Assembly (NCBI RefSeq): GCF_964204645.1
Contig: NC_134030.1
Coordinates: 9,885,222 to 9,949,221, forward strand
DNA length: 64,000 nucleotides
Direction of reading: 5' to 3'
Source: Tubulanus polymorphus
Taxonomy: Eukaryota; Animalia; Nemertea
Part shown: one piece after another, positions 22,801 through 64,000 of the stretch
How the letters are laid out: every line of letters starts with the position of its first letter
Position numbering within the stretch: position 1 is the stretch's first letter
Position numbers and translations under genes: made by a program
The notes under the pieces: generated by a model
Database searches by the model: none
What the model saw: the letters and a program-made list of their open reading frames with translations, nothing else
Told to the model about the DNA's origin: nothing

Positions 22801-24662
22801 ATAGAAAATGGTGCAACATATTCATTATGCCTTATGCGGACATTCGGCATAAGAATCTAAGCAGGCCGGAGTATATATGACGTATAAATGTAAAATGTGA
22901 ATTTCATTGATACCGAATGATCCTGATTCGGCCGCCGGTTGGCTGGATCATGTACATCGGTACTTAGTACCGGTAATCGCACATTGGTACCGCCGCGGAT
23001 AACTATGATTGTCATTTTTTCAATGCAGGTCCGTCAAGTGGAGTACAAAGACAAAATGGACGATGAATGGGAACTCTTTCAAAAGGCTATGAAAGAAGAA
23101 AAATTAGTAAGTTTCGCCTTTCGGTCTTCATCGTGAAGAATCTAATCAATTTCGAGTCTAACTGCTTTCCTACCTTATTCAGTGTCTATGATGGTTGATT
23201 ATTAGTAGATACGTATGAGTACTTTGTACCAAAACATAGCAGTAATGATTCACCAGAAACTATGGACGAATCCCTTTACTGATAAAAGTCTTTACAGTTC
23301 AACGCATCATTCAGGCTGTCAAGCCCAAGTGCCTAACTGAGATATAAAGTCGTGATTGATTGCCAATAAAATCCATCTCGCGATGTCTTGCATTTTACAG
23401 TAAACCTCGGACAAACTGGGACTGACAAAATTGGTCCGAGGTGAGGAAAGTTCGAGTTAAAGCTATAAAAAATAAGTTAGGAAATCACAAAATTGATTTG
23501 GTTTTTGTCCGAGTTAGTCGAAAGTTGGGGTTGGGCATGTAAGGCGAGATTTACTGTACGATGTATTAACTTATTGATGATTTCTATTCCCACGTGGTAC
23601 CATTTGTTGCGATATCGATTTGCTTTTTATTTCGCTGTCCGTTATTACGTAGGTGTCCGAGGCTATAATCGAGGATGAGGAGGAACACATTACTGAGGAG
23701 AGAAACATCGAGGAAATCGACGATCAAATGTAAGTACCCGGTACATTGAATCGATTGCAAATTGATGGATCTGATTTTTGCCTCGGTATGGTAAACTTTC
23801 TCCGAAGAGTTTTCAGGAACTCTCAGCAGGGATTCGAACCTGATGTCGTCGATCGACTCGGGCCACGGCACGAAACCCCATCAACACAATACCGGATGCG
23901 CAGTTTTACCGATGATGCAAATTTCACAGATTTCTCAATCGTTAATGTTTGGTATTGTAAAAATACCATAGTCGTAATACTGCTTTAATTTGTCACTATG
24001 CCAGCTATCCTCCGTGTTAACTTATACTTTTGGTGGACGTTGCTTCAAATCTATTGCTTCATCTCTGTGGATTCTCATTAGATTCAGAGATTCGAAAAAT
24101 TGACGATTTGAACACATTTAAACACAGTCTGAAACACCTGGGCCCAGTTTCACGAAAAAAGTGTACGCCTAAAACGGTTAAGTTTGATTTGTTGTCCTCA
24201 TTGAAAAAATGAAGTAGACCAATAGCAATTACGCACAAATTTTGGGTTTAAACTTTTTTGTGAAACGGGGCCTGCTTTTCTGCAAAGCGTATGGACTGTA
24301 GATGCAGCTTTCACTAATTTTAAAGTGCTGGTTGACATTTTTTTAAATAAAATAGGTAGGCGCTCTACAAATTTTCAGATTATTATTATGATTACTATGA
24401 ACTGAGCCAAGATGATTAAATCAGTGGAACAAGTGAAATTATTTTTTTTGCATATTTTACTCGAGCTAAAATAAAATACAATCTTGAAATTTGTTGCAGG
24501 CGTCGGTGGTCGAAAGTGCACGCTTTGGCCCAGAAGAAAGAGCAAATAATGCAGGAACATAATCTAAATTCGGCGAAGGGATCGGAAAGTGATAGTGACA
24601 TTGATGAACAGGCGTTCGATGAATTTCTCGACTGGCGGTCGAAGTCCGCGTGGAAATCGTAG
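19868..24662 (+). CDS. ZNF830: Zinc finger protein 830 (CCDC16), copy 1, 313 aa; exons 19868-19992, 20281-20380, 21206-21339, 22031-22161, 22369-22502, 23029-23106, 23653-23729, 24500-24662
   Basis: GT-AG introns with consistent phases (942 nt). Motifs DLRRLMK..VEHPCAKYNSLDQLICIVCNSQVKNEKLWNAHLMGRTHKE (zinc finger), LPEGFFDNPVEDAKVR, DEWELFQKAM and C-terminal FDEFLDWRSK. Confidence 0.92.
20838..20968 (-). mobile_element. tRNA-derived SINE fragment in ZNF830 intron 2 (duplicate at 31124-31254)
   Basis: The minus strand starts with a tRNA-like head (GGGCTAATGGTTAGAGCATTTGAC...GGGTTTGAACCCC) followed by a core-like GGTAAGACAC..GCCTCTCTCCACCCAGGAGTAAATGGGTA. Confidence 0.65.
22628..22792. mobile_element. 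PIF/Harbinger-like MITE (duplicate at 32914-33078)
   Basis: Imperfect TIRs GGGATCATTCATTTATTACGTACG / CGTACGTAATTAACCAATGACTCC with internal CCCCCCTCCCCC blocks. Confidence 0.6.
23398..23556. mobile_element. Tc1/mariner-pogo-like MITE with TA flanks (duplicate at 33684-33842; related ends at ~1348, ~11735 and 40950-41117)
   Basis: TA|CAGTAAACCTCG ... CGAGATTTACTG|TA. Confidence 0.65.
24141..24272. mobile_element. Harbinger-like MITE with GGCCC(A/C)GTTTC termini (duplicate at 34427-34558; relatives at ~4205-4367, 13193-13320, 21367-21489, 36909-37667, 50685-50792)
   Basis: GGCCCAGTTTCACGAAAAAAGT / ACTTTTTTGTGAAACGGGGCC inverted ends with CTG-like flanks. Confidence 0.65.
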
Positions 24663-25265
24663 CACACGGAATATTATGTTAACTGCCGAACAGTGTTGCT
24701 AAAAGACTTACGAAATGAGAATTTAAATAATATGCTAGCTGAATTCAGAATAATACTAGACGATTTACACAATACGCCAGATGTACGAATAAAACTGGTT
24801 ATGCTCTTATTCAGGATTGCATTAACCTGTCAGTGCTATTCTTATCAGATTAAGTGTAAATACTAGCAAGTGTTCCATATTGTTTTTGGAAAATGTGGAT
24901 GAGAATTGATGTGTAAGGAATAAATGCCAAGTTAAGAAAAGCCATTTCAGAATTTTTATGGAGCCAGATATTTTCGATATCGATTTAGACCGCGCCTGTT
25001 TTTCCTGCTGTATTTCAGTATTTTTTGATGTCTCGGATTATAGATGTGGTGGCCGGGAGACTGAAAATCAAGATCCAAATGTTCGATCCAGATTTGAATC
25101 CGATTCCGTGTTATACATCAGTATTTTTTTCTGATCCGATTCCGTCTGTTACGCAATACTCGTGGACCCGGAAATAAATGGTGGTGATGCAACTGTCAAA
25201 TAAATTACGAAACATCAAATAAGCATAGATTAGTGAAATAATTCTAAGGTTCGAAATCGAAAAAA

Positions 25266-25450
25266 GGGTAAGATTCAAGAATAGGGGACTAGTGGTTAGG
25301 TTTAGGGTTAGGTTTAGTTCCCTAATCATCATTAATTACTGTATACATTACTATCATTATATATCATCATTATCAATTACTAATATTATTACTTAATTGA
25401 TTACTATCACTACATATATATTGCTATAGTCCCCTATTCTTGAATCCCCC
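25266..25450. mobile_element. Small TIR element with TTAGGG-like motifs and an 8-9 bp TSD (duplicate at 35552-35736; one end also at ~10787-10841)
   Basis: GATTCAAGAATAGGGGACTA / TAGTCCCCTATTCTTGAATC; CGAAAAAA(G) on both flanks (25258, 25451). The element is absent from the paralogous site at ~49375. Confidence 0.8.
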
Positions 25451-25751
25451 CGAAAAAAGCGTGGGTATTAGATAATAAAACTAAAATCAGTTGACACTAA
25501 TGTCTATTTCAACTTGACTTGAGCACACTTGACTGTTGATAGCACATCAAGAGGCCTAGCTCGTCAGCATGGTCAGTTTTGCGGGGAGTTTTTTGATGTA
25601 CATAATTATTAATAAATTTTAATTAAAATTGTAGTAATAAGGTGGCGCCGCTATCGATCGGTGTCTGGGATTGATATAGTCAGTTACCTAATCGTTGGTG
25701 GTAAGCACAGGGTTAGATCAAAATCAGGATTCGATTAAATCAAATGTCGTA

Positions 25752-26570
25752 ATGTCCTATCCACCTCCACAAACTGGATATCCAGACTATCCAATTCCTG
25801 CTGGACAGCCTGGGTGCCCACCGCCGACTGGAGATCTGGGGTATCCATCATCTGGAGGACAGCCGGGATATCCACCACCACCGGGCGCGTCCCCGCCCAT
25901 GGAACCACCTCCAGCTGACACACCGCATGGCACACAAGCACCACTGCCTCAACGACAACAGCAAACTGTTGATGCGCCTCAACAGAAAAAATCAAAGGTG
26001 GGTCAAAACTAAAAGCCTTATAAAAGAACACTTTCAATAATTGTTTAACAAGTTGCTAATATTTTTGAATATATTTTGAGCAGTTGCTGTTTTACGTCAT
26101 TCCCACAAATGACAAATTTCAATAATTTCCCGAGTCATTTAGTGGAGCTGGCTCCAGTGTTCTCTCCTTGAGTTTATAGATGGGTTGCCACCCCCTTCAA
26201 TTTTACCACCCCTCTGAGAACCCATTACATCTTCTGCCCCTACCAGAGTGGTTAACAATATTCTATCAATGTTGATAATTGCTTTGAAAAATAGAAGATT
26301 ACATCAAAATTAGGCTTGCGACTTCAGCAGCCACAACTTTAGAATGCAGTCCATTTAGAACACCAGCACATGGCCTGAGAACACTGAGCCTAACTTGACC
26401 ATAAGATACCTTGCCATATTTTAATGACGTGTCAAAACTACACTAGATTTATAGAATTTTTTATACTTTTCTAGGGAGTCAGCAGATCGTTCGTGCATAA
26501 CTTCTCGCAGGCGATTGTTTCACTTGGAAACGATGTTGGAAAATGTTTTTCCCGTAATGGCCGCGTATTT
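25752..26570 (+). pseudogene. Truncated copy (coding exons 1-2 only: 25752-25997, 26475-26570) of the proline-rich/beta-trefoil gene
   Basis: Appears identical to 36038-36856 but is cut off by the duplication breakpoint at 26718. Confidence 0.85.
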
Positions 26571-26780
26571 GTAAGTTTCTGTGTCAGTTTTAAGAAGAGA
26601 TGGATATATTTTCATCATACCACGGCCGGTTTTATAGACCGATATTAACTTAATCCCGGAGGCAAACTCAATTTGAAATGAATCGATATTTAGGCCTTAT
26701 GTTGCGTAAAAATCGGTGGGAAACATTGGACCACGAAACTGGGAATCATTGGACCACAAATGGGAATAAGTGGACCATGG

Positions 26781-26781
<1 letters not shown>

Positions 26782-26824
<43 letters not shown>

Positions 26825-29800
26825 TACGGTTGCGTAGGCTTTTGCCTTTAAACCGATTAAGACTACTTTGTTAGGGTGCGCGGTTTACAGGGTGTAGAGA
26901 CGGTCCCTCTAGTGCCTGTCGAGACTCGACTTAAATGAGTCCATTGTGTCACTCATTACCACTTGACTTGGGAGACTATTCCAGGGTTCAAAAACTCTCT
27001 GGGTGAAACTGTTTTGTCTGATGGTTGTCTTGCATCTTGGTTTGGTAAGTTTAAGTGGGTGACCCCTCGAATGTCTGTCGGTTAGATTTGCGGTCAGTGG
27101 CAAGAGTCTCGTTAGCTGTCTTGTAATGGCCATGCAGATATGTATAAGTCTGGATCATGTCACCGCGAGCTCGGCGGTAATGTAAGGATGGGAGTTGAAG
27201 GTCCTTGAGGCGTTGTTCGTATGATTTGTCACGAAGACCTGGGACCAGTTTTGTTGCACGACGTTGTACGTGTTCCAAGCTATCGATGTGTTTCCGGAGG
27301 TAGGGTGACCAGATGCTGGCGGCGTATTCAAGGTGCGGGCGAACAAGGCTTTTGTAGAGGATCTTAAAGGAGTCTTTGTCTAGGGCTGTGAAGGTTCTCC
27401 GAATTATAATCAACATACGTTGCTGTAGTGGTGACTTGTTGAATGTGGGTATCAAATGACAGTGATGGGTCCATGACAACTCCAAGGTCCTTTTCCTGGG
27501 TTGAGGTTTTGAGATGGTGAGATTTACCTTCACTGTCGATCATGGAGTATACATAGTCTGGATGGTTTTTGCCTATGCGAAGGACTTACATTTGTCAGGA
27601 TGGAAGGACATCTGCCATTTCTTGGCCCACATGGATAGTTCTTTCAGATCATCATCTAGTATTTTACAGTCGTTGACGCTGTTTACAGTACGGTAGATTT
27701 CGGTATCATCGGCGTATAGCTTGATAATGCTCTTGATCGAGTTAGGGAGGTCGTTGATGTATATTACGAAAATGATTGGGCCAAGAACGCTTCCTTGAGG
27801 AATACCGCTAGTGACGTTCGCCCAGTCGGAAATTTCGTCGTTGATCTTAACACATTGCCGCCGATTGTAGAGGAAGTCACCTAGCTAGTTATTCAAATGG
27901 CCTTGAATGCCGTAGTTTCTAAGTTTGACAAGCAAACGCTGGTGGGGTACGGTGTCAAATGCTTTCTTAAAATCTAAAAATATTGCATCAATGGGATTTT
28001 TGTCATCAAGAGCTGCGTGCCAGTCGTCGATTGTCTCGGTTAGCTGTGTAACAGTGGATCTACCTCCTACAAAGCCATGTTGGTCATCTGATAGTAAGTT
28101 GTTGTTGTAGAGGTAAGACATAATTTGGTCGCGGACTATGCTTTCGAGAACTTTACATACAGAGGAGGTAAGGCTGATAGATCTATAGTTTCCAGCATTG
28201 TATTTTGGTCCCTTCTTGTGGATTGGAGTGACAAGCATATTTCTCCATGCATCTGGGATTTTTTGAGTGTTGAGAGATTTTTTGAAGATAATCAACAGCG
28301 CTGGTGCAATCTCTTCGGCTGCTTCTTTCAATACTCGGGGAAAGATGTTATCCAGGCCATGCGATTTGTCGGGTTTGAGAGCTTTTAGCTTTTTGACAAC
28401 CATTTCTAGGGTGATCTCGATGTTTGTTAAGGGTGGCCCAGAGTATTGGGGTTCCTCATCAGGGATGGTAGCCAAGTCCTCTGTGATGAAGACGCTCGCA
28501 AAGTATTGGTTAAGCAGGGTAGCTTTCTGACGGTCGGAGCATGTGCGCTCGTTGGGACGTCCGGTTTCAAGATCTGGTATGATGGCTGTATTCTTAAGCT
28601 TGGAGTTGACATAATACCAGAAAGCCTTTGGGTTTGATCTCGCTTCGCGTGCGATTTTGTGTTCAATTGACTTAATTGCACTGCGGGTGGCCCATCTTGC
28701 TTGATTGCGGGCCCTGGTATATGCCGTGTAGTCAGATCCATCTTGAGTTTGTTGAAAGCGCTTGAGGGCATGGTGCTTTTTCTTTACTTTCCGCAGCGTT
28801 TTTTCATCCATCCATATAGGCTTGTTTTTTCTCTTTAAGTTGAGGCTTCTTTTCGGGATGTTAGTGTTGACTACAGTGTCTAGTTTGCGTTGCAGTATTT
28901 CCATGCATTTATTCACTGAGTCATCGCTAAGTAAGTTGTTCCAGTCTTGGCTCAGTAACTCGCCTCGAAGGGAGTCGTAGTCACCGCGGTTTAGGTCGTA
29001 TCTTTGTTTGTTCGTGTCGGATGCGGCTGTAATGGAACATTCGATGTCAAAGGTTAGAACGGTGTGGTGGCTTTCGCCGATAGGTGCAGATGATTCTATG
29101 TTAGTAACGTTGGTCATGTAGTCAGTCAGTATAAGGTCTAGAGTGTTAGGTTGTTGATTACTGCGGAAGTGAGTTGGTTCGGTTACGTGCTGCTTGAGAG
29201 ATCCTTCCCTGGTAGCATGCAGGAAATTTGCAGCTGGACTTTCATCATTGCAGGAGTAATTTTCGTCAGTCCAGTTGAGTTCTGGGTGGTTGAAATCACC
29301 ACAAATCAGGAGTTTATGGTTATTCGATACTAGATCTACCAGCGCCTTGTTGAGTTGGATATCATTCGTTTCGGATTTTGATGGGCTACGATATATTGAT
29401 CCAATTGTGAGGGTGCCGAATTTTGTTTTTACCTGAGCCCAAGCAGATTCGCGGAGTGAGTTTGTTATCTTTTCTGTAGCGGATGGAGTCAATAGCTGTT
29501 GGGTTTAGGCTTTTGTGAATGAAGAGGCAGGCTCCGCGATCAAAGTTGCCGTTATAGAGAATAACTGGTAGTTAGGGATGTTGAATTCTGACTCTTGGTA
29601 CGGTGCTTCATATTTCTTGGGGATAATCTCGGTGAGGGCGATGATGTCTGGCTCGCGCTGATTTATGAGGACTTGTAACTCTGCCATCTTGTTAGTTAGG
29701 GTGTCGGTGTTGGTGTACAAGCCCTTGAAGTGTACCGGTATTTTTCTTTATAGTTGGGGCGGGGATTTCCGCTCCACGACTAGGTTGTCTCTGATTACCC

Positions 29801-29969
29801 ATTGCTTCGGGTCTTGACCTGTAGCTGCGGCTTCCTGCCTTTTTGCCTTCAGCAGTTTTCTCAATATACCGGCCTCTTCTTTTTGCTGGAGGGAGTTCAT
29901 GTCCCTCCTGACTGACAAGTTTTTTGAAATCGTGTTACTTGACGTTTGTAGTTTGTGCGCGTTGCGCAG
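26782..29969 (-). mobile_element. CR1-clade LINE, inactivated (copy 2)
   Basis: Same 5' truncation point and disablements as copy 1, plus a 5-bp deletion near 27110 and a longer (CAT)13 tail. Confidence 0.95.
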
Positions 29970-30153
29970 GATTTAATAAATAAATTCTGGTTTTTAAATT
30001 CTTTTAATCTGTAAATAGTGGGATCTTATCTTATTATCCGTTCACCACGTTTGAGTGTGATCATCGTTCTATTGATAATTGGGATTCGAACTCAATTACG
30101 TCAAACGGAGGAGCATTCTGCACGATACGAACTAACCAGCACTGATTTCAAAG

Positions 30154-33100
30154 ATGGCGGCCTCCATGAAAAAGTCGAAACAAAAATCGAAAAAACCCTT
30201 GTCCAAAGATGATCTGAGGCGTCTCATGAAAGTACATCGCACTGAAATAACTAAAAAAGTAGAACATCCATGCGCCAAGTGAGTTTTGATCAGGAAATTT
30301 GATTCGTGATATATTTGGAAAGTGTTTATTTATTGGCAGATTGCATTTCTGGTTGTTTCAGTTTGTTTGTTTGTTCCCCTCTTCGGCCTCGGCTCCGTCC
30401 GGCCCTCGTATTCCTCTCTCGGTCTCTGACTCTGCATTTCTACATGTTCCAAATACATCAGGGTCTTGTTAAGGGCACATATTCAAGGAGTTTTATCTTT
30501 CGATTTTTGTGTTGTGATATTCTATAGTTTTAGTTTGATTTATTTTGCCATTTGATCGTGTTTCAGATATAATTCTTTAGATCAGCTTATATGCATAGTG
30601 TGCAACTCTCAAGTAAAAAATGAAAAACTCTGGAATGCCCATCTTATGGGCCGAACCCACAAGGAGGTATGATATATGTTCTACATCATTAGTTTTTTCT
30701 TCTCAGTTTTTCTATCATTTGTTTATCGCAACTCTTGCTGATTCCAACCAGAGTCAGTTCAAATGTGCTCCAAATTTGGTATTATTACCCCCAACCTATA
30801 TATAATTCTATACCGTGTATCAGTCATCTAACCCTGGGGAGAAGTAACATCCAAGCAACTGCTTATATTAGTCATGGTTCTATAGTCAATCTAACACCTG
30901 GTAACCTAAGACAAGCTCATTTTGATTCTACAAGAGAATCAACTTAATTCAAATCATTTGAAACCAACGAAATACATTTGACCAGTTTTTTTTATAAATC
31001 TGGGTTAAATATCATATTTTACATGCATTTATTTGTAGATGGACTGAAAGTACATGTAAAGGCCTATAGGGTAATTCACTCTAAAATGAACCAATTAGGC
31101 GTTCAGGAATCATTTATCTGGCCAGCTACCCATTTACTCCTGGGTGGAGAGAGGCAATGAGGATGTGTGTCTTACCTGGAGACACTACTGGGGTTCAAAC
31201 CCATGCATCTCGCATCCAAAAGTCAAATGCTCTAACCATTAGCCCACACCGCTCGCTCATATACATGTAGCCTATTAGATTGTCAAGCTCGCTGATGCCA
31301 GATAGTCATATTTTTAGGTTTTGGACCATTTTCTAAAATGGTCAAAAATTGAATTTGTTCCATATGTCTGACAGAAATTCCTGTTCCAAAAAGATCCGAC
31401 TTAATTCGGATTACAAGAATATATCATATTACCTGTAAATTTAAAGAGTACAAATAAGAAAATTATACGTTTCCGTGTAAATCCTATTTAGAATGTGGCA
31501 GAATTGAAACGACAAAAAGAACAGCCCACTCCGGAGTCACGACCCAGTCACAAACGACGCGTCAGTGATGATGGCAATGATGCAGTTACTAAGAAAACGA
31601 AACAGAATGCGGAAACAACGGAAAAGTAGGTGTAGTAAATATCATATGTTCAGGGCCCAGTTTCGAGAAGGTTTTTGGGCGAAAATTTTTGATTTGATAG
31701 CTATGGGTTACTTCATGTTTTCAATGACTACAATTCATATTTTTTAAGCTTTAACTTTCTCATGAAACTGGACCAGAGGCTAGTGCTGGTGCTAGTGAAC
31801 AAAGTTTTTCGAACGACTGACCCTTGTTAAAGAATTCTGTGCCCGGTTCAATTTTAGCCACTTAATTTGAAGCAACGTTGAGAAACTGACACTGATCCAA
31901 ATATTTGTTCTCTGGCTTCTGTTACGAGACCCTTATTTTCATACTGTCCGTCTGTGTGTCTGTCTTTCAGCTACTTAGCTTCGTTAATAGTGGGTCGCTC
32001 TTGATGAAACTTGGTTACAATGTTAGTATGGGGGTCTAGTTGTGCCGTGCAAAGAATGGGCCCAGTGCGCCAGCTAGCGGCATAACTAGGCACTAAAAAC
32101 TTCAAAATTCATAAAGGTGTCACAAGAAGATATAGCTATTGGCACTAAGTAGATACAACATATCCAAAATGCAATGGGAACTAATGCATGGGATCGAATT
32201 TCAGGGTTTAACAGTTCTCGCCTATGGCTCGTTACTTCTAAACTGAAGTACATGTATATGGATAACAATTCAATCGCTTTTGTCGTAATAATTTATTTAT
32301 TTCTTGTTTAACACAGAGCTGGAGGAATTGTCTCATTGGGAAGTTATGACTCCTCAGATAACGACGATGATAACGAAAATGAAAAAGATAAAGAAGACGA
32401 ATCATCGCCGGCTAATAGTAACCAACTCAAAAATCAACTCCCTCCAGGTTTGTGGTTTGTAATTTTTTTCAAAACACAGCCCTCACATAGCCAAGTCGCC
32501 CTCATCGATTAAAGTGCCCATTAGAATTTTCAGCTCCCACCCCGTTGGAAGAATCCTAAATTCAACCAACAACAATAGAAATCAATTTTATGATAATTTA
32601 TTATGAAAACGTGCCCTTTGTCTCAGTCATTGCATTGTTGTTCATTTATTGTAGATTTCTTCGATAAAGACGTTCAGCCCGGCTCAAGTGCTGAACAAGC
32701 AGTTGGAGATGAACTTCTGACGAAGTCTGCATCGATGGCCGACGCATTACCTGAAGGTTTCTTTGATAACCCTGTAGAAGATGCCAAGGTAAAGTTTAAT
32801 CCATATCTCGATCTAAACTGGATATTACGGTATACATGAATTTAGAGTGAAGCCTATTGAAGTTGGATCTTTTTGAAACCGGAAGATCCGACTTAGTGCT
32901 AAAATTCAACATTGGGATCATTCATTTATTACGTACGCCTAAAATTTGAATTTTTCAACCCCCCCTCCCCCTCTACGCAAAATCAGCCATTTTTTTCATA
33001 TACATTAAGCATTGCAGTACGCAATTGCACTGACCCATCCCCCTCCCCTAATACGTACGTAATTAACCAATGACTCCATTGCAAATATAGAAAATGGTGC

Positions 33101-34948
33101 AACATATTCATTATGCCTTATGCGGACATTCGGCATAAGAATCTAAGCAGGCCGGAGTATATATGACGTATAAATGTAAAATGTGAATTTCATTGATACC
33201 GAATGATCCTGATTCGGCCGCCGGTTGGCTGGATCATGTACATCGGTACTTAGTACCGGTAATCGCACATTGGTACCGCCGCGGATAACTATGATTGTCA
33301 TTTTTTCAATGCAGGTCCGTCAAGTGGAGTACAAAGACAAAATGGACGATGAATGGGAACTCTTTCAAAAGGCTATGAAAGAAGAAAAATTAGTAAGTTT
33401 CGCCTTTCGGTCTTCATCGTGAAGAATCTAATCAATTTCGAGTCTAACTGCTTTCCTACCTTATTCAGTGTCTATGATGGTTGATTATTAGTAGATACGT
33501 ATGAGTACTTTGTACCAAAACATAGCAGTAATGATTCACCAGAAACTATGGACGAATCCCTTTACTGATAAAAGTCTTTACAGTTCAACGCATCATTCAG
33601 GCTGTCAAGCCCAAGTGCCTAACTGAGATATAAAGTCGTGATTGATTGCCAATAAAATCCATCTCGCGATGTCTTGCATTTTACAGTAAACCTCGGACAA
33701 ACTGGGACTGACAAAATTGGTCCGAGGTGAGGAAAGTTCGAGTTAAAGCTATAAAAAATAAGTTAGGAAATCACAAAATTGATTTGGTTTTTGTCCGAGT
33801 TAGTCGAAAGTTGGGGTTGGGCATGTAAGGCGAGATTTACTGTACGATGTATTAACTTATTGATGATTTCTATTCCCACGTGGTACCATTTGTTGCGATA
33901 TCGATTTGCTTTTTATTTCGCTGTCCGTTATTACGTAGGTGTCCGAGGCTATAATCGAGGATGAGGAGGAACACATTACTGAGGAGAGAAACATCGAGGA
34001 AATCGACGATCAAATGTAAGTACCCGGTACATTGAATCGATTGCAAATTGATGGATCTGATTTTTGCCTCGGTATGGTAAACTTTCTCCGAAGAGTTTTC
34101 AGGAACTCTCAGCAGGGATTCGAACCTGATGTCGTCGATCGACTCGGGCCACGGCACGAAACCCCATCAACACAATACCGGATGCGCAGTTTTACCGATG
34201 ATGCAAATTTCACAGATTTCTCAATCGTTAATGTTTGGTATTGTAAAAATACCATAGTCGTAATACTGCTTTAATTTGTCACTATGCCAGCTATCCTCCG
34301 TGTTAACTTATACTTTTGGTGGACGTTGCTTCAAATCTATTGCTTCATCTCTGTGGATTCTCATTAGATTCAGAGATTCGAAAAATTGACGATTTGAACA
34401 CATTTAAACACAGTCTGAAACACCTGGGCCCAGTTTCACGAAAAAAGTGTACGCCTAAAACGGTTAAGTTTGATTTGTTGTCCTCATTGAAAAAATGAAG
34501 TAGACCAATAGCAATTACGCACAAATTTTGGGTTTAAACTTTTTTGTGAAACGGGGCCTGCTTTTCTGCAAAGCGTATGGACTGTAGATGCAGCTTTCAC
34601 TAATTTTAAAGTGCTGGTTGACATTTTTTTAAATAAAATAGGTAGGCGCTCTACAAATTTTCAGATTATTATTATGATTACTATGAACTGAGCCAAGATG
34701 ATTAAATCAGTGGAACAAGTGAAATTATTTTTTTTGCATATTTTACTCGAGCTAAAATAAAATACAATCTTGAAATTTGTTGCAGGCGTCGGTGGTCGAA
34801 AGTGCACGCTTTGGCCCAGAAGAAAGAGCAAATAATGCAGGAACATAATCTAAATTCGGCGAAGGGATCGGAAAGTGATAGTGACATTGATGAACAGGCG
34901 TTCGATGAATTTCTCGACTGGCGGTCGAAGTCCGCGTGGAAATCGTAG
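30154..34948 (+). CDS. ZNF830: ZNF830 copy 2; exons 30154-30278, 30567-30666, 31492-31625, 32317-32447, 32655-32788, 33315-33392, 33939-34015, 34786-34948
   Basis: Same exons as copy 1 at +10286; no coding difference noticed. Confidence 0.9.
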
Positions 34949-36037
34949 CACACGGAATATTATGTTAACTGCCGAACAGTGTTGCTAAAAGACTTACGAA
35001 ATGAGAATTTAAATAATATGCTAGCTGAATTCAGAATAATACTAGACGATTTACACAATACGCCAGATGTACGAATAAAACTGGTTATGCTCTTATTCAG
35101 GATTGCATTAACCTGTCAGTGCTATTCTTATCAGATTAAGTGTAAATACTAGCAAGTGTTCCATATTGTTTTTGGAAAATGTGGATGAGAATTGATGTGT
35201 AAGGAATAAATGCCAAGTTAAGAAAAGCCATTTCAGAATTTTTATGGAGCCAGATATTTTCGATATCGATTTAGACCGCGCCTGTTTTTCCTGCTGTATT
35301 TCAGTATTTTTTGATGTCTCGGATTATAGATGTGGTGGCCGGGAGACTGAAAATCAAGATCCAAATGTTCGATCCAGATTTGAATCCGATTCCGTGTTAT
35401 ACATCAGTATTTTTTTCTGATCCGATTCCGTCTGTTACGCAATACTCGTGGACCCGGAAATAAATGGTGGTGATGCAACTGTCAAATAAATTACGAAACA
35501 TCAAATAAGCATAGATTAGTGAAATAATTCTAAGGTTCGAAATCGAAAAAAGGGTAAGATTCAAGAATAGGGGACTAGTGGTTAGGTTTAGGGTTAGGTT
35601 TAGTTCCCTAATCATCATTAATTACTGTATACATTACTATCATTATATATCATCATTATCAATTACTAATATTATTACTTAATTGATTACTATCACTACA
35701 TATATATTGCTATAGTCCCCTATTCTTGAATCCCCCCGAAAAAAGCGTGGGTATTAGATAATAAAACTAAAATCAGTTGACACTAATGTCTATTTCAACT
35801 TGACTTGAGCACACTTGACTGTTGATAGCACATCAAGAGGCCTAGCTCGTCAGCATGGTCAGTTTTGCGGGGAGTTTTTTGATGTACATAATTATTAATA
35901 AATTTTAATTAAAATTGTAGTAATAAGGTGGCGCCGCTATCGATCGGTGTCTGGGATTGATATAGTCAGTTACCTAATCGTTGGTGGTAAGCACAGGGTT
36001 AGATCAAAATCAGGATTCGATTAAATCAAATGTCGTA

Positions 36038-44385
<8,348 letters not shown>

Positions 44386-54747: not shown

Positions 54748-56204
54748 ATTCTCAGGACTGGGTGAACGTCCTGTTATTTACATTTTTTGCCTTGGTATTT
54801 TGTTTGTTTGTATGGTTTCACTTAAAAAGTCCAGAGATTCCCCGGGAGTGACTTATTCGCATTTATCCTGAATTGAATGTGCCATGGTGCTAAATACAAC
54901 GAGCTTGCTGCTATTTTGGAATTAGACTAAGTGGAACTCAATTTAATCACTATCACTCAAGTTGTCTCTATTTCAATAGTTCCAATTTGTATTTGGGAAT
55001 AAATTGGGATTCGAGCCCAACACGTTAGTATGGGAATTCCCTCTATCACGTGACGGAATTCTGACCATTGGTTGGCTTGCACGCTGAACGAGGAAACCCC
55101 CTACTACTATTCGCGAGTTTAAAGGCAAAAGGTTGAAAGCCTGTTTTGGTCGATGGCGAGTGACGTCACTAGTACAAATTCCGAGCGGTTCGAATCCCAC
55201 AATACGCCAAAATCACTACGGCCGCTCTGAGCGCACATCGCATTTCAACGTTGCCGTTTAATAATTGTAAAATAACTAATAATAGTTTAAGTTTTATAAG
55301 GGTTAGAAGTACATTGTATTTACTGCTAGTGTATGTATATATCATGTACGGTTGCGAGAAATCCCTGCCCTAGTTAAACAGTAAGTCCACTAAATCTTTA
55401 AATTTTAAGTTGTTTAATGAAACTATTATTGTTTTAAATTGTTAAAACTGCAAACTATGGTTGTCGAAGATGCACCTTCTTCACATCCTTTGAAATCCTA
55501 GATAGCATCGCTGTCGGCAAAGACCTTCAGGTCTGTCTTCAACGGCACATCGCTTTGGAACAAGCGACTACTGTGTTATCAAATCTGAACTAGGTAAAAA
55601 AATGTTCCCCAAAAATAAAGACAAGTAAACGGATTAATTTGAGGTTTGAATGTTTTTGTTTATTTGTTGGTTCAAATCGAACCCTCGTCATCCTGATCTC
55701 CATAAATCTAAGAAAAGTATTCGCACACTTAAAACAATAAAATACGAGCAATAAGCAATAACATCAGACTGGAGTAAGTAACTTTACTTAATTCACAGAT
55801 ACAATCCTACACAAAACAATAGCTATTCAGTGGCGGATCCACCCCTCTATTTTTACCGATGTAGCCGCAAATCTATGCGTTACTGAGTAAAAACCGAATG
55901 AAATCTTTCTATTAAGTAATGCTCAGAATGCACCTGCTTGCATCTATTTTTCCAAAAAATTTTTAGGAAGGGTCTTCGCGTTATCGGTGCTTGCTCTGGA
56001 ATGGCTTACAGCCATCTGTTGTTGCTTTCATTTGCCCCCCCCCCTTCAAAATGCTGGATCCGCCCCTGAGTGCAGACAAAATGATCGACAAAGACATACA
56101 GAACTCTAAAACAACAGTTAACAATTTAAGCAACGATAGACAAAACAGATAGCTGATTACTTTACAAACCTGTTGTCAGAACCTTAATTATTTTTACATG
56201 TACA

Positions 56205-57085
56205 TACAGAGGACTGTTAACAATTCAACCAATGAAATTGCGATAGAGATACAGAACATACAGCTTTAACAGTAAACAATGCAACCAATGAAATTGCGAT
56301 AGAGATACAGAACATACAGCTTTAACAGTAAACCATGCAACCAATGAATTGCGATTAACTAAGACCTACGAGCAATTATCAAGTTTGATAATTGCTCGTA
56401 GCTAAGACATACAGGACAAACAGGACTAACTTAATTGCGATAGACATACAGGACATACAGGATTAACAGTAGACAATTCAACCAACGAATTGCGATTAAC
56501 TAAGACATACAGGACTAAACCACAGGACATACAGGACTAACAGTAGACAATTCAACAACCAATGAATTGCGATTAACTAAGACATACAGGACATACAGGA
56601 CTAACTTAATTGCGATAGACATACAGGACTAACAGTAAACAATGCAACCAATGAATTGCGATCGCGATCACAAAGACATACAGGACAAAACCACAGGACA
56701 TACAGGACTAACAGTAGACAATTCATTAACCAATGAATTGCGATTATTTAAGAAATACAGGACTAACTTAATTGCGATAGACATACAGGACATACAGGAT
56801 TAACAGTAGACAATTCAACCAACGAATTGCGATTAACTAAGACATACAGGACTAAACCACAGGACATACAGGACTAACAGTAGACAATTCAACAACCAAT
56901 GAATTGCGATTAACTAAGACATACAGGACATACAGGACTAACTTAATTGCGATAGACATACAGGACTAACAGTAAACAATGCAACCAATGAATTGCGATC
57001 GCGATCACAAAGACATACAGGACAAACAGGAATAAACCACAGTAAATTGCGATAAAAAAGACATACAGGACTAACTGCAGTAAAT
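56205..57085. repeat. Complex tandem array (GACATACAGGACTAA / AATTGCGAT modules) with a ~337-bp higher-order duplication
   Basis: The block starting CAGGACTAACTTAATTGCGATAGACATACAGG occurs at 56421 and 56758. The array lies ~300 bp past the transposase stop codon. Confidence 0.9.
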
Positions 57086-57389
57086 ATATAGGGCCTTAGG
57101 AATGCAAAATTCATTCATTTTGTCATTTGTAAACATTCCACAACTTATTTCATTATGTCATTTCCAGTTTTCAAAGGGAATTTTCTTAACTTCAGATGCC
57201 TCGAGGACATAGAGCACTATAAACACCAGTGCATATACATCGCTTCTTAACCTTATATATAATCGAGTAAATATATAGGTGACTAAGTGACGGTCATTAT
57301 AGGCTTCTACGTTCACCATGGGAAATGAAAATATTTCTAACGTCAGGGATTCATTCGAAACCCGATCAATAATATTCTATACAAACTAT

Positions 57390-60300
57390 TTAGGAAATCG
57401 GGTCACAATGAAAACAAAACCACCTGATATGTTCAGGAGGAGCCTCATTGATTGGAGCACATTTCCAATGATACCATCTATGGCAATTATCACATTCAAT
57501 TGAGAATGTGGACTTTTTCTTAGGATTAGCATTGCAGTTTTTGTGGCAGACAGGGCAGGTTTCAGCAACTAACCGAGAAGGGGTTTTTTCAACTTTTGAT
57601 GACAAAAGATTATCTAGTTTCAATTTTGCTAGGTTTTGGAGGCCTGCATTTCCAGGTTGATCTATAAGAATTTCTAATTCTTTTTCAGAATTGGAATTAT
57701 TGATTTCTGTAATAGGAGAACTGTTGAGATAATCATCTCTATTATTATAATCGATTACAATAGATTTTTTCTTATGATGATTATGTTCAATACGAATGTG
57801 CTTTTGAAGGAATGTTTCACTTGCATATGAATTAATAACCCCATCTGCCCAACAAATAGCACATGAGATAGGTTTCAAAGATGAATGAGAAGTGGATATG
57901 TGCCTATCTAGTTCCCTGCGACATGAACAAAGATATGGAGGATTTATTTTGTCTTTAATACAAAAGGAACAGACAATACTTTTTTCAAATAAAACAGACT
58001 TCGAGTCATTTTTAACAACTGGTATTGACTTAATATCTTTTGGTTTGGTATCTTTTGATTTTTTTGGTAAGGATGATTTATTCTGACTTAAAATATCTGC
58101 TGAAAATTCGATATCATTGCCAGGATCTGGATCAGTGGAGTCTATGGTTTCAATTTCTGATATTTTAGCTTTTTTACCTAGTTTGATAGCAGCATTTTCA
58201 ACCATAGCAGAAAAGGATACACCTCTGTTAGCAGGTCTAATTATCTTTCGCCCTCCGTGTCTTGCATTCTCAGCATCTTTAGGCATTGTAACCTTAGGAC
58301 AGTAAGGGTCTATCACTTCAAGTTCAGGAAGGTTTATGGCAACCTGATTGTCCTTGATTGGACCCTCAGCACGCCTATGAGCCATATTGTGAGGTTGTCG
58401 TTTGGCAGGTCGTCCGCTTATTAACTTAATTCCACAGTGGCTTTCATTATGTAAAATACTTAGAATGTGCCCTTTCCGAGCAGCATTGATATCATTCGAG
58501 CTAGCAATGTGGGAATGATCTTTTAACTTATCAATGAGGGTAGATGAAACAGAAATATTTTGTCGAGTAAAATTGTAAGTTGGCAGAGGCTCCACAATGT
58601 GGAATTTATATGCATCAATTAAAGCCTTCGTTGTGGTTATATTGTTTTTTTGGGCAAAACAGGCAAAAAGATGTTTGCAAAAATATGGTTGTCCAATCAT
58701 TATAAAAGCTTCACAAGTACATATACCTAGTTTCAAATTGATTAAATGGCAATTACCATCTACGTATGAAAGACAATTTTCAGGAACGATTGTAATAACG
58801 TAATTGAATAAGATACGACTGGATATTGAATCTAAATTTCCTATGTACCTTCGGCATTTTTTTGAAATGTCATATGAATGTTCCTCGGATATTGATACTT
58901 TATCGGGGAATCTTTCTTCTAAAACATCAAGCTGATTGAATGTATATTGAGTATCACCATTGAAAAAATTATCATTATCTTCTAACCTATTTAAGTTCTT
59001 TCGTGAAGAACTCTTCACAACAAACCAATTAGTTTCTTCATCATATTTTAAAATCTCATTATTCTGTAATAAATCAAAGGCTCTTTTGCAACACTTTTCT
59101 ATCTTTTCAAGGTGACGTATATTCTTAACTCGTTGGTCAAGTTGCTTAAATTGGAGATTGTTCATATTTGTCGCTTTGATCTCATCATTAAAAACATTTT
59201 CAAACAGTAATCGTACAAAAGATGATATCAGTTTATTTAGGTGTCCACTTAAGTAGACATCATCTATTTGTTTGAATTTGCGCTCAGTAATATTATCAGT
59301 TAATAGCAAAGGGTTATTTCTGTTAGATTGGTCTGACTGATAAATTGATTCAGCATTGAATGCATCAGACCAAATTTGGGAATTAAACCAATTCTTCTTT
59401 AGGTAATCAATAAATAATGTTTTTGTATCTTGCGACATAAGGTCTAAAGAAATATCATTCTCAATAAAACTAATAAATGAATTGGCTATATCAGTTCTAG
59501 AGGAAGCATCCCATGATCTCATAATGCATTTGAAACCAGTTTCTAGAGGCTTGCAAAATAAGCGAAGTTCTTGATTTTCATTCATGAAGCGACGAATACA
59601 CTGCAGGACATGAAAATTACATAGTACTGATTTAAGATTATTGTCAGATGCTCCTTGCTTTAGACTTGCATCTTTATCATGTTGTACAAAAGGACAAAAT
59701 CTAGATGTTGATGAACATGGCTTGATTCTGAAAAAACCATTGCCATCATTAAATATATAGAATTCAGATGGATGATTACATTTTTCGTCTTTACATGGTG
59801 TATTGGCTAGAACTAACTGGATGGTAGTTGCATGAGTAGCCCCCCCTTCATCACTACTAATTGATGCAGCAGCAATACGTCCTTCATTTTTGTTGTCTGC
59901 AAAAGTTACAAATGAAGTTTTGAATTTCCACGAATTGAAATCATGTTTCACGTCAATACCAATGACAGATTGTCCAAAGTTGGATAAATGTTCCAGAGAA
60001 CGAGGATCAGAGAGAATAATGTGATAATTACGTTTGAGTGTGGCATCCCCTCGTTGAAATAAAAGGACAGATTCATAGTTACCCTCTAATAATTTTTCAG
60101 TATTTCTCCAATCAGAACTTAGAATAGGTATTTCGTCTTGAGATTTCATATGTAATTTTATCGAAGATTTATCAATATATTTCAATCTATTTGAAATTTG
60201 ATCTAGGGTATGGTCATGACCGGCGCCATCATTTACATTTGATACATGAAGGTTATTGTGAGCATTGGTGGCAGAAAGAACCTTCATTGCTGTGGCTTTC

Positions 60301-63126
60301 ATCATGACTCTATTTTCATCCCATCTATCTCTAGTAGATAAATTAGGTCGCTTTTTAATTTGTAAAGGAATATTGTCATGATATTGACCATTAAGTGGTT
60401 TGCTGAAGATTCTCCACTTGGATAAATCAGTACTAAATAATACAAGTTTTGTTGCCCAATAACACATAAAATGAGGGTGAATTAATTTTTTTGGCTCAAA
60501 CTGCTGCCTTAACTTCACAGGACGATCACGTTTATTCTTCAGCTTATAGTTGTAACAGTTGGAACAAAGTGTTTCACCATCAGCATTTTTCCTCCATTTG
60601 TTAGACATGGTAATGGAGCAATGAATACATTGTTTATCATTTAAAACAACGTCAATTTGACATGAGGGACAATTAGTGATGTTACTGGACATATTCAACT
60701 TTGAAAGATAATATCCACATGATGATTTACAAACTGAAGACTTTGACGAACATTTTATGAGCATTTCTGCAGCCACAAATTGAGAAGTATCCTCAACAAT
60801 TGGCTCAATAAATTCAAATTTATTATCTAATCTATGGGTTTGCCAATTCTTTTTTAATGTTAAGGAAGCTTTCATCGTTGTCTGGTTACCAACAAATGAA
60901 GGCCGCACATTCTTATGCAGACGAACTGTTTTTGTAAAATCAAAAGTGAATCTATCGAAATAATATTTTGTGTCAGCACCAGTCATTACTTCCCCATTTT
61001 CAACCCATTCATCACTAAGTGGATTCTGGTTGTTGAGGTATTTCTTGATAGTGTCAATGGCTACCTGGTCATTTGTACCTTGGTCTGTACAATGAAAACT
61101 TTTATACTTCGTCTTACTGCCAGTTGAATGAAAAGCAACTTCAAGATAATGCTTTCCTCTCCTGATGCGATGGGAGATAGTAGTTTTAGAACCATTAATA
61201 TGGGAAGTTAATGGTTCAGCTGAATTTAGAGTTAATGAGGATTGAGGATTCAAAATTGAGGATGTAGATTCAGGTGTAGATTCATTATTCGAAATTGGTG
61301 TAGATTCAGGTGTAGATTTAATAGTCAAAATTGGTGCAGATTCACTATTCGAAATTGGTGTAGATTCATTAGTCAAAATTGGTGCAGATTCACTATTCGA
61401 AATTGGTGTTGATTCAGGTGTTGATTCATTAGTCAAAATTGGTGCAGATTCACTATTCGAAATTGGTGTTGATTCATTAGTCAAAATTGCTGCAGATTCA
61501 TAATTCGAAATTGGTGTAGATTCAAGTGTTGATTCATTATTCAAAATTGGTGTAGATTTAGATTTGGCTGTAGTTAAGACTGATTTGCTTTTTTTAGGGG
61601 CAATATAAGAGTCTGACATCTTTAATTCAGAACTAGCTAGTGTATTATTTGACTCAGTTGATCGTTTATGTCTCTGTCTGCGAGATAATCGTGATATCTT
61701 AGAGAAAGTAGTACTATTAGCAGTAGGTTGAGATGACTTTGAGAAGAGTTGAGTAATATCAATTAGATGTTTCATAAGCCAATTAATCAATATCAATCTA
61801 ACAAAATCAGAATAGTTAGAAATGTTCTTAAGATAAGATAATTCATTGGGAGATGAAAATACACTTGAAATATCCTTTTCATAATAGGTTGCAATGCAAG
61901 CACCAATTAATGTAGCAGGGCCACAGACAGATGAACATGATTGGAGTGGGTAATAACTAGTACAATTATTACTACATACATGCACTGAATTTTCAGTAAC
62001 AAAATGAGGATCATGGAGGTGGATATAAACAGGATCAGGGCAATTCAAACCTTTCAAAACAGATCTTAAATGATTTTTAAATTCCCTTGGACAATCCCAT
62101 GCTAGTGTATCAGCATAACACAGTTTGTTACTTTTTGGGTAAAAAACTGCTAGTGCATAATGATTGGCAACAACATGTCCATAAGAATTTAGAAATACGA
62201 AATCGTTTTGGGTGCCAACATGCAGGAAAAAAATTAGTTTATCACAACTTATGAGTGGATTAGGACCGAATCTTTTATATAAATTTGAAACATATTTCTT
62301 AGCATCAAATGTAAGTGGCATCATAAATGCATGAATATTACAGTACTGTTCATTTATCATAGATGCAAAAGCATTTAACACAGATCCTTCAAACCATTTT
62401 TGATTAGTCATCGTCTGAAGTTCTGATACAGATACGCTATTATTATTACCAACTGGAAATTGTTGAGAGGGTTTTAAGGAAAAGAGCATATTTGAAAATG
62501 CTTGAATCTGTTCCCAATCGACTGAATCAGTGGGGCTTAAAGGCTTACTATTTACCCAAAGATTCATGGCAAAAAGATCTTGTTGTTTGGTTTTAGCATA
62601 ATGTAAGAAAAGAAACCTATTAATCTGATCAATAGAATAGCAGCCTGTATCGAGTCTCACATGGATATTAATGGAAGGGTCACGGACAATCCTTGACTGC
62701 ATCTGTGCTTTTATGTCCTCCAACTGATTTTTGTGGGGCATAGTGGGGGCATCATCAGCCAAATGACATGAATTAGACATGTCACAAATTCTGAATGACG
62801 TGACCTTTGATGGCATAACAGGAGGAATTTTCAAAAACTGATAGTCATTGAGGCACATTTCTGTTGGATTGTAACTAAAATTTCTTCTACATACATGTTC
62901 ATCATCAGAATCATTCTCATCACTATCATCAATTATGATTGGTTCGATACCTCCACCACCTGTGATACTTAGCTGTTTTTTGTTTTCCATCCAGCTATCT
63001 TCCTGCATCTTTAATCTTTCTATCCTTTCTTTCGAACTATCTTCCTGCATCTTTTCTGCTTCCTCTATCGTTCCTTCCGAGAAATTGTCACAAGCCGCGT
63101 CCTTTCCTTCTTCCTCCATTGTCCGC
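57390..63126 (-). CDS. Large terminal exon of a Mutator-like (MULE) transposase-related protein: Ulp1-like protease, GATA zinc finger, MULE DDE, SWIM, two C2H2-like fingers, PHD
   Basis: Uninterrupted ~1910 codons. Protease: KWFEGSVLNAF, NHYALAVF, YADTL, QSCSSVCG. GATA: CIHC-x17-CSNC with WRK..DGETL. MULE: VIGIDVKH..DNKNEGRIAA, QHDKD, CNFH, TDNITERKF. SWIM: CTCEAF..FCKH. PHD: CPVC..IECDNCHRWYHWKC..WFCFHC. Confidence 0.85.
61255..61560 (-). repeat. Coding minisatellite encoding ESTPISNSESAPILTN repeats
   Basis: Repeats visible in both DNA and protein; in frame. Confidence 0.9.
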
Positions 63127-63287
63127 CTGAAATACACATTATCAACTCACTTTTTTTAGACATATGAATAGATAGAGTATGAAATTACCCATATAGGCCT
63201 AACATAAAACATGGGTATCTCTGAGTCATTTGCATTAAGTCATTTAGATTTGTAGGTACTAAATTAATTGAATTATGTTGTACTTAC

Positions 63288-63909
63288 ATTTCAGTATGGT
63301 TTAAACTAACATGGTCTAGAAGATCTTTCCAATTGGTGAATTCAACTCCGCAAAAACATGTCGAGTCAGCAGGATCCGTCTGTGGATGAATAACCTAATG
63401 TGGAAGAGCACATTAATCTGTTTTTGCTTCAACATCTAAGCAAAAATAACAAAAATGAACCCGCATCTCGCAGAAAGGGCATCAAACTTACATGTTCCAC
63501 TGACTTCCTTTTTCTGTTAAATCTTTTAGTATTGTGACAACTTCTATTGTAGCATCCCTGAATATGAAAACAAAGCTTTACAGCATAAATCATACCAATA
63601 CCAATGAATTTCTATAATTTCATTTCGAGAAACATATTACTCACGTTCTTAGTCTGATAAAAAGGAGTAAATAATTGAGGCTTTAAACAAATAGCAACAC
63701 CAGCCACATCAATTTTAGTCATGTACTGGAAAAAAAAGACAGATTTGTGCATGCACAGCCTTTAGGTAATTGTGAAATAAAAGTGACCAAACTAATATTA
63801 AATCATAAGTTCTTGAGATGATATGTACCTGGTCGAATGTGAAAAAGGCTCTTTGATCTTCACAACAGAATTGTTTCCTTGTATGATGCGCAACGTCAAA
63901 ACTGCTATA
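63288..63909 (-). CDS. Predicted upstream exons of the MULE gene: 63829-63909, 63645-63653 (9-nt microexon), 63492-63557, 63288-63394; the start probably lies beyond the window
   Basis: Each exon is bounded by AG/GT, with phases 0, 0, 0 and 2 matching the acceptor at 63126. They encode CYNRSC..H|VIH and CFCGVEFTNWKDLLDHVSLNH (zinc-finger-like). Confidence 0.55.
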
Positions 63910-64000
63910 CTGGATTGAAGGATACAAAAAACTGTTAAAATATATCTAACTTTATAAAGATAAATCACGTACAAATCACTTAGGAAAACAACTTTACCAC

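Follow-up and report, generated by a model that had tools for sequence, protein, structure and literature searches.

A giant reading frame in Tubulanus polymorphus as the probable transposase exon of a recently mobile Mutator-type transposon

The 64,000-nucleotide stretch of the Tubulanus polymorphus (Nemertea) genome analyzed here (contig NC_134030.1, positions 9,885,222 to 9,949,221; hereafter the window) contains an uninterrupted reading frame of 1915 codons on the minus strand (57390..63137). This frame is very probably the last exon of a transposase gene that belongs to a cut-and-paste transposon of the Mutator superfamily (Mutator-like element, MULE), autonomous and active in the recent past. 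An initial annotation, made from the nucleotide sequence alone, had described an intact, uninterrupted AT-rich frame of ~5.7 kb. The open reading frame (ORF) listing and the translation bear this out: the frame has no internal stop codon, the G+C content of its DNA is ~34%, and the landmarks that had been named are all found in the translation where that annotation had put them. No other ORF of at least 100 amino acids (aa) was detected within 55–64 kb of the window.

Ends, copies and recent movement of the transposon

The limits of the element were determined by alignment of the flanks of eight copies, in which homology begins and stops at identical bases. The window copy spans 11,639 bp (G000:C6:9940346–9951984), which corresponds to window position 55125 to a nominal position 66763. 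Its 3′ end lies at position 55125 and its 5′ end 2,763 bp past the last base of the window, the part of the transposon inside the window being 55125..64000 (minus strand). The terminal inverted repeats (TIRs) are 44 bp long and consist of 33 perfect bases, one mismatch and 10 more bases (GCAAAAGGTTGAAAGCCTGTTTTGGTCGATGGC(T/G)AGTGACGTCA). The 3′ TIR, identified by 33-mer counts and comparison of the ends, is located at 55125..55168, and its 5′ partner outside the window, at G000:C6:9951941–9951984. The window copy is flanked by 9-bp target site duplications (TSDs), AGTTTAAAG on the plus strand, identical at both ends; comparison of the flanks between copies placed the first at 55116..55124, and the second adjoins the 5′ end of the element outside the window (G000:C6:9951985–9951993). 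Perfect 9-bp TSDs, differing from copy to copy, are present at six of the seven copies with both ends readable (the window copy included). In the seventh (C1) a 9-bp duplication is offset by one extra base; the eighth copy (C13) begins at a contig edge and has no matching flank. Inspection of the borders for TIRs and a 9-bp TSD, as the initial annotation had suggested, has thus revealed both.

Each TIR contains the palindrome TGACGTCA, a CRE/ATF-type site located 36–43 bases from the tip (window 55158–55168; L031:4084–4094). Between the stop codon and the 3′ TIR lies a subterminal minisatellite (56219..56999, identified with Tandem Repeats Finder) composed of units of 56, 77 and ~166–171 bp, the number of which varies among the copies of the element.

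The copy number of the element, which it had been proposed to check, was examined in the source assembly (268 Mb). This search gave 70 protein matches to the core region of the transposase, including eight full-length copies of ~100% identity, seven of them with a complete open frame; the other matches are truncated and frameshifted copies, and separate families at 40–55% identity. A count of the 33-base TIR core across the genome gave 62 occurrences (0 of the reversed control), and these termini pair into about 25 bounded elements: ~10 of 11.6–12.6 kb, one of 17.2 kb and, as the remainder, internal-deletion derivatives. The long copies are 99.5–100% identical and differ mainly in minisatellite length and in a 543-bp insertion. 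Certain sizes of the derivatives recur at different loci (4.77–4.79 kb four times, 6.86 kb three times). Such same-size derivatives at unrelated loci indicate non-autonomous copies that were mobilized in trans after the deletion had arisen.

The three 6.86-kb derivatives were mapped to G000 C3:6469429–6476293, C3:19918258–19925121 and C11:12983883–12990747, and the four smaller ones (4,765–4,791 bp) to unrelated loci on C1, C2, C4 and C6. The ~543-bp insertion, at element position ~661 (in the 5′ untranslated part), is common to near-identical copies on G000:C1 and C8, and the 17.2-kb copy (C2:19705419–19722669) carries a larger insertion.

A contig of public run X1 (Tubulanus polymorphus) spans the insertion site of the window copy in its empty state, across a single AGTTTAAAG. 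Since the insertion flank is single-copy in the assembly, this contig is interpreted as an allele and not a paralogue. It differs from the assembly by several single-nucleotide polymorphisms and therefore derives from another haplotype or another individual. The empty allele is read as direct evidence for duplication of the 9 bp when the element inserted, and for polymorphism of the insertion in the window. The element has moved very recently in Tubulanus polymorphus; it is young and probably still mobile.

These data also discriminate between the two options that had been left by the initial annotation, namely that the frame is either young or domesticated. The TIRs with their TSD, the many near-identical copies, the amplified deletion derivatives and the empty-site contig agree with the former. 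A host gene derived from a MULE (like FHY3/FAR1 or ZSWIM) that happens to sit in repeated DNA would be compatible with the “uncharacterized protein” loci with isoforms listed by NCBI, with the intact catalytic residues and with the conservation of the family across phyla. However, the gene is enclosed by intact TIRs and a TSD, about 25 TIR-bounded copies occupy unrelated sites with TSDs of their own, and the 99.5–100% identity of the copies, the empty allele and the amplified deletion derivatives refute domestication for the copy in the window, so that this explanation is extremely improbable.

With its intact ends, seven intact frames, spliced transcripts (see below), empty allele and amplified derivatives, the element is a rare case of a very large animal MULE that is demonstrably young. 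Its youth and intactness make its use in transposition assays, and its development as a large-cargo gene-transfer tool in lophotrochozoans, a realistic prospect. It also calls for caution in the use of annotations, as NCBI presents copies of this transposon as ordinary “uncharacterized protein” genes.

Transcripts, catalytic core and affiliation of the transposase

Contigs of run X4 skip 12 segments with CT..AC ends on the plus strand, equivalent to GT..AG on the minus strand, and therefore represent spliced minus-strand transcripts. The transposase gene is transcribed and spliced, and the giant frame is the last of at least 13 exons. The terminal coding exon, stop codon included, extends over 57390..63125 (minus strand), as determined from the translation, the intron joint in the contigs and the NCBI models. 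The splice acceptor (63125/63126) coincides with the end coordinate given in the initial annotation, while the mechanically defined ORF continues to 63137. The intron joint (L031, 489 to 651) has GT..AG ends on the minus strand, and the junction in the NCBI models P0001 and P0158 falls on the identical point. The models of this gene are 1995 and 2196 aa long; the longer one, isoform X1, is P0158, and the search with the core region described below returned, at 100% identity, a 1995-aa entry of NCBI named [quoted passage not shown]. The exons were searched singly, the joined protein being represented by model P0158.

Upstream of the terminal exon, a coding exon with a C2H2-type finger (CFCGVEFTNWKDLLDHVSLNH; Pfam zf-C2H2, E 0.04) is located at 63287..63392 (minus strand); it is present in the spliced X4 contigs and in both P0001 and P0158. 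Three small exons follow in the upstream direction (63490–63556, 63644–63725 and 63829–63909, minus strand), as determined from GT..AG joints and exon mapping of P0158, and the next exon on the same strand starts at 63998 and crosses the end of the window. Thus, the view that all domains are encoded in one polypeptide stands as far as the frame is concerned, but it understated the protein, to which at least 12 upstream exons add the C2H2 finger and a partial SGNH esterase.

A search with the core region among 5.8 billion proteins revealed ten full-length relatives at 32–44% identity; their sources are Patella caerulea (a limpet), Oratosquilla oratoria (a mantis shrimp) and assemblies of the European Nucleotide Archive (ENA). 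In an alignment of 12 full-length homologues, representing at least three animal phyla, no substitution is seen at D1062, C1173, H1176 or E1285, nor at any of the four cysteines of the GATA finger or the four SWIM ligands, and D1154, His326, Asp343, Gln399 and Cys405 are conserved in at least 90% of the sequences; the last four, which belong to the protease, do not reach a higher value because one homologue (P0007) is without the protease region. Such conservation of residues across homologues shows that the landmarks exceed chance. A profile built from 11 homologues (aa 880–1500) and scored against 1.84 billion representative proteins gave only 274 matches, and the family is therefore a small one.

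The MULE-type DDE (RNase H-fold) core, with an all-alpha insertion and a SWIM finger, was delimited to aa 1020–1500 (58638..60080, minus strand) by an AlphaFold2 model, profiles and fold searches. Its catalytic motifs are D1062, D1154, C1173xxH1176 and E1285, and it includes a zinc-site-like insert (C1115/C1120/H1122/C1141). The SWIM zinc finger (C-x-C-x11-C-x-H, aa 1473–1489; 58671..58721, minus strand), with the ligands C1473, C1475, C1487 and H1489, is invariant in 11 homologues. Distant matches of the family profile, with E-values of 1e-13 to 1e-34 for the homologue, carry the Pfam MULE domain at the aligned place. For instance, P0081 (profile E 1e-17) matches Pfam MULE with 34.8 bits, above the 27.6-bit cut-off, P0037 and P0069 contain both MULE and ZSWIM1-3_RNaseH-like, and P0109 contains MULE together with SWIM, the latter above its cut-off.

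The AlphaFold2 model of aa 1020–1500, built from a 51-sequence alignment (pLDDT 89.9, pTM 0.88), places D1062 on strand 1, and D1154 directly after strand 4. The helix that comes next opens with C1173/H1176, E1285 lies on a helix after the all-alpha insertion, and the SWIM ligands belong to a strand-strand-helix unit. (An earlier model of aa 880–1500, built from 11 sequences, was poor, with a pLDDT of 52, and was set aside.) A Foldseek search of the PDB with this structure returned ISCth4 of the IS256 family as the top match (E 4e-4, probability 1.00), with Hermes, a hAT transposase, in second place. In a shape search of the ESM Atlas all 10 of 10 rows were MULE-domain clusters, including FAR1/FRS and SWIM (TM 0.52–0.59 over 300–340 residues), and a language-model feature search also assigned the core to MULE (0.95). 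Mutator transposases have their prokaryotic relatives in the IS256 family. ISCth4 (PDB 6xg8), the best solved match of the modelled core, shares with it an RNase H-fold DDE domain with an alpha-helical insertion, but the identity is 8–9%, the TM-score over the whole model is ~0.3, and ISCth4 has no eukaryotic accessory domains. On the basis of the model, the core is a predicted MULE/IS256-like RNase H-fold DDE domain followed by SWIM, in agreement with the initial call of a DDE core and a SWIM finger. Its fold, profile and feature neighbours, combined with the 9-bp TSD, assign the element to the Mutator superfamily.

Within this superfamily, the possibility was considered that the element belongs to Rehavkus, a group that is sister or outgroup to the canonical MULEs, rather than to these MULEs themselves. 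Rehavkus elements have 9-bp TSDs, TIRs of 26–400 bp and one ORF; their transposase includes a PHD finger, and a minisatellite immediately precedes the 3′ TIR. Among them is a 10.7-kb element of the leech Helobdella, a lophotrochozoan (PMC6446971, Table 1, Table S1). All four descriptive features are found here (9-bp TSD, 44-bp TIR, C-terminal PHD finger and the minisatellite at 56219–56999), as are a single large gene, a TIR length within the short-to-long range of the group and a lophotrochozoan host. In contrast, the catalytic blocks, compared by eye, differ: those printed for Rehavkus read (L/I)x(L/F)D(A/S)TGS, VVTD(F/H)S, C(C/A)AHF and SN..VE..F, while the present family has G(I/Y)DxKxDF, QHDKD, LCNFH and NxTERKF. 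Moreover, searches by profile, feature and structure place the core closest to Pfam-MULE clusters, and Ulp1, GATA and SGNH domains are not mentioned for Rehavkus in the accessible literature. Membership in Rehavkus is, on this evidence, improbable, and assignment to the canonical MULEs is preferred.

Accessory domains and their possible roles

An Ulp1/SENP-like cysteine protease domain (family C48, clan CE) was recognized at aa ~230–470 (61728..62450, minus strand) from the family profile, motifs and language-model features. Its signature comprises His326, Asp343, Gln399 and Cys405 (nt 62162–61923), which are invariant in 10 of the 10 homologues that contain the protease region and are conserved across molluscs, crustaceans and nemerteans. 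The surrounding motifs are RWLxD (of the RWL(N/S)D type), NH(F/Y), Y(A/I)D(T/S)L and PxQxCxxxCG, the last of these invariant. The family profile matched yeast Ulp1 (1euv) with an E-value of 4.1e-7, followed by SENP2, SENP1, SENP5 and a chlamydial deubiquitinase/deneddylase, and Peptidase_C48 accounts for 29 of the 30 nearest named clusters in the feature search. The distances from His to Asp (17 residues) and from Gln to Cys (6 residues) are equal to those in Ulp1. Compared with Ulp1 and SENP1/2/5 (PDB 1euv), the likeness thus consists of the WLxD-type motif, the His-Asp-Gln-Cys order and identical spacings, but the transposon domain has extra conserved Cys/His residues between Asp and Gln, its active-site motif is Q-x-C-x3-C-G, and as a single sequence it falls below Pfam detection (PF02902). 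Judged by these sequence characters, the domain appears to be Ulp1/C48-like, as had been proposed for the region ahead of the GATA finger.

The protease is joined to the DNA-binding part by Ser/Thr/Pro-rich tandem peptide repeats (ESTPISNSESAPILTN-like), which were read from the translation (aa ~520–640; 61218..61580, minus strand). The next segment (60528..60752, minus strand), defined by profile and by Pfam matches in the homologues, contains a cysteine cluster (C796, C803, C807, C823, C826) and then a GATA-type finger, C837-x2-C840-x17-C858-x2-C861 (nt 60629–60555), the cysteines of which are invariant. The family profile matched GATA-3 (E 2.4e-12), and Pfam GATA was detected in 6 of the 12 homologues (best E 6.6e-6), this protein alone reaching 17.7 bits against a cut-off of 26.8.

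Directly before the core lies a conserved H-x2-C-x-W...H block (aa ~885–945; 60303..60485, minus strand), in which H889, C892, W894, K897, N916 and H920 are invariant. MULE transposases usually carry a WRKY-GCM1/FAR1-type finger (PMC1702500). The H889-C892-W894...H920 block may be a candidate for such a DNA-binding finger; no profile or structural support for this identification was obtained.

Two C2H2-like finger patterns (aa ~1721–1790; 57753..57971, minus strand) were recognized by pattern only: the match to Pfam zf-H2C2_2 has an E-value of 1.5, and the C/H positions are kept in most homologues, as seen in the consensus. The C-terminal PHD finger (aa 1861–1911; 57405..57557, minus strand) was identified with Pfam (PF00628, E 3.4e-5); the score is borderline (24.2 bits, cut-off 24), and the match recurs in homologues. 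The GATA, C2H2-like and terminal PHD modules that had been predicted were thus recovered, by the GATA-3 profile match, the conserved patterns and Pfam, respectively.

The partial SGNH esterase is encoded by exons outside the window (L031:1702–2447). The first ~115 residues of P0158 (query 1–300) matched positions 65–177/178 of Pfam Lipase_GDSL_2 with an E-value of 1.5e-7 (32.5 bits, cut-off 32.9), and the nearest solved sequences, both non-significant, are the OSK domain of Oskar and the esterase of zebrafish L2 retrotransposon ORF1p. The exon at L031:2333–2447 (minus strand) has no ATG before the start assigned by NCBI, and the preceding exon ends in an in-frame stop codon; the predicted esterase is therefore without the block that holds the Ser nucleophile (block I). 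In the transcript, this same exon reads ...RIGLVADSIL...CPGGT..., resembling SGNH blocks I and II, and its frame continues into the exon that follows. A search upstream of the homologous genes found no SGNH exons in Patella (L047), and an ENA contig (L048) gave only a weak block-III-like match (E 0.04). The N-terminal extensions of ~500 aa in P0008, P0010 and P0011 were also considered as SGNH domains and rejected, as they contain low-complexity sequence and a C2H2 finger instead. GDSL/SGNH esterases are present in CR1/L2 ORF1 proteins and in rotifer Terminons (PMC6431247). The likeness to these systems (CR1/L2 ORF1p, PDB 4c1b) lies in a GDSL_2-type esterase encoded by a mobile element; here, in contrast to the retroelements, the module is found in a cut-and-paste DNA transposon, spliced onto the transposase and, in the prediction, with Ser block I missing. 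No published description of an SGNH esterase spliced onto a cut-and-paste transposase was found in the literature.

A protein search with the full alignment returned two proteins, of which P0165 (ENA, 1864 aa) was the useful one. It contains a protease of the same Ulp1-like subtype (26% identity over 295 aa, E 3e-29). In its middle, P0165 also matches the “KDZ-associated” CxC4 cluster of Pfam (32 bits, above cut-off), and it has a C-terminal PHD finger, which brings the Zisupton/KDZ superfamily into consideration as the family of the present element. Boehne et al. 2012 are said to have described giant multi-exon Zisupton transposases that combine SWIM with an Ulp1 protease. Giant multi-exon transposase genes are indeed typical of Zisupton (PMC9297572). 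However, the TSD found here is 9 bp long, versus 8 bp in Zisupton and 7 bp in Kyakuja (PMC12730594), there is no match to KDZ (PF18758) or CxC in the protein or in 11 full-length homologues, P0165 aligns nowhere outside the protease and the PHD finger, the catalytic core and the cysteine clusters differ, and the core has its neighbours, by profile, feature and fold, among MULE and IS256. Zisupton/KDZ was rejected for the core on the grounds of the TSD length, the lack of KDZ/CxC domains and the MULE neighbours, and an element of this superfamily is very unlikely. The Mutator assignment is retained, and the shared Ulp1-like module and PHD finger of P0165 suggest exchange or parallel recruitment between superfamilies.

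Several results weigh against the assignments described above. With the whole protein and with four pieces of it, Pfam MULE (PF10551), SWIM and Peptidase_C48 were not matched at E-values up to 10, and the MULE, SWIM and C48 assignments stand on family profiles, transitive matches and predicted structure. Accordingly, the profile check proposed in the initial annotation, when run with Pfam on the single protein, recovered the PHD finger, left GATA below threshold and missed MULE, SWIM and C48; the present MULE family is too divergent for the PF10551 model. In the case of the protease, the alignment of the profile to Ulp1 spans only the RWLxD/Trp motif, His and Asp, the Gln/Cys half being recognized as a motif. 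One homologue with the full architecture (P0014, 1744 aa) is devoid of the catalytic Gln and Cys (YPVEQADAAYG, versus YPLQSCSSVCG), and the protease is therefore not indispensable in every lineage. The RNA contigs may derive from this copy or from near-identical sister copies. Finally, WGATAR motifs are not enriched in the first and last 1 kb of the element, the 3′ region or the minisatellite (2–5 observed versus 2.5–8.2 in shuffled sequences). The concrete version of the GATA-like DNA binding proposed in the initial annotation, in which the finger would bind GATA motifs in the element ends or subterminal repeats, is unsupported on this account.

The architecture as a whole had been regarded as unrecognized. 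This holds only in part, as Ulp1 and PHD domains on animal Mutators are already on record. MuDR-type transposons with Ulp1 in Hydra magnipapillata and Branchiostoma floridae appear in Repbase Reports of 2008–2009, to the extent that these are cited in PMC2836005. [quoted passage not shown] In contrast, neither a GATA finger nor an esterase, nor a protease in N-terminal position, was found on Mutator transposases in the accessible literature, which does not cover the Repbase entries. The set of accessory domains is unusual but only partly unprecedented.

The animal MuDR elements with Ulp1 and the plant KI-MULE/CUMULE elements resemble the present one in combining a Mutator-superfamily transposase with a C48/Ulp1-like protease. 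In plant MULEs, ULP usually forms a captured gene of its own. The protease of the present element lies at the N-terminus, in frame and followed by GATA, with C2H2 and SGNH exons upstream; this comparison does not extend to the domain order of the Repbase elements. The complement of modules (esterase remnant, C2H2, Ulp1-like protease, GATA, MULE-DDE, SWIM, C2H2-like and PHD) is unusually complete.

In the mechanism proposed for the transposase, the zinc fingers ahead of the core (cysteine cluster, GATA and WRKY-like block) would bind the ends of the element. D1062, D1154 and E1285 would coordinate metal ions for excision and staggered 9-bp integration, and the PHD finger could tether the complex to histone H3 tails. 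As to the Ulp1-like domain, our best guess, held tentatively, is that it acts as a SUMO/ubiquitin-like isopeptidase where transposition takes place, its targets being either the transposase itself or factors of chromatin, repair or silencing. A less probable role would be cleavage of the 2,196-aa protein at the Ser/Thr-rich linker, which would free separate modules. Self-processing by a protease has been proposed for an OTU-fused MULE (PMC1702500). The functions envisaged in the initial annotation, in which the PHD finger may read chromatin and the protease may counter SUMO-dependent silencing, fall within this conditional scheme.

A broader and rather doubtful proposal is that the Ulp1-like and PHD accessory pair has been exchanged between, or independently recruited by, MULE and KDZ-type giants as a shared anti-silencing toolkit, to which the nemertean lineage would have added an SGNH esterase of the kind known from retroelements. 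If true, this toolkit would act on chromatin recognized by the PHD finger and strip it of SUMO-type marks, thereby blunting, for instance, SUMO-dependent piRNA/heterochromatin silencing. The element offers a tractable system for the old question of why transposons as unrelated as plant MULEs, Ginger1, Zisupton and Helitrons keep acquiring SUMO/ubiquitin-type proteases.

Other features of the window

Positions 16505–26718 and 26796–37004 form a tandem segmental duplication of 10.2 kb with 99.9% identity. Each unit contains a 535-aa ORF (17599–19206 and 27885–29492) with Exo_endo_phos_2 endonuclease and reverse-transcriptase domains, and each therefore holds a fragment of a non-LTR retrotransposon. 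An intronless ORF of 363 aa at 5810–6901 (minus strand) matched rhodopsin-family seven-transmembrane receptors (Pfam 7tm_1, E 8e-18) and is probably a host gene for a G protein-coupled receptor. The 208-aa ORF at 13769–14395 (plus strand) matched only positions 217–378 of the Hsp70 model (E 1e-41), and is an exon of an HSP70 gene or else a fragment of one. At 38744–40723, a Pro-rich repeat ORF of 262 aa, similar to Cornifin/SPRR (E 1.6e-13), was identified in a stretch with strong GC skew (0.32–0.33) and an internal direct repeat of ~0.9 kb with 95% identity.

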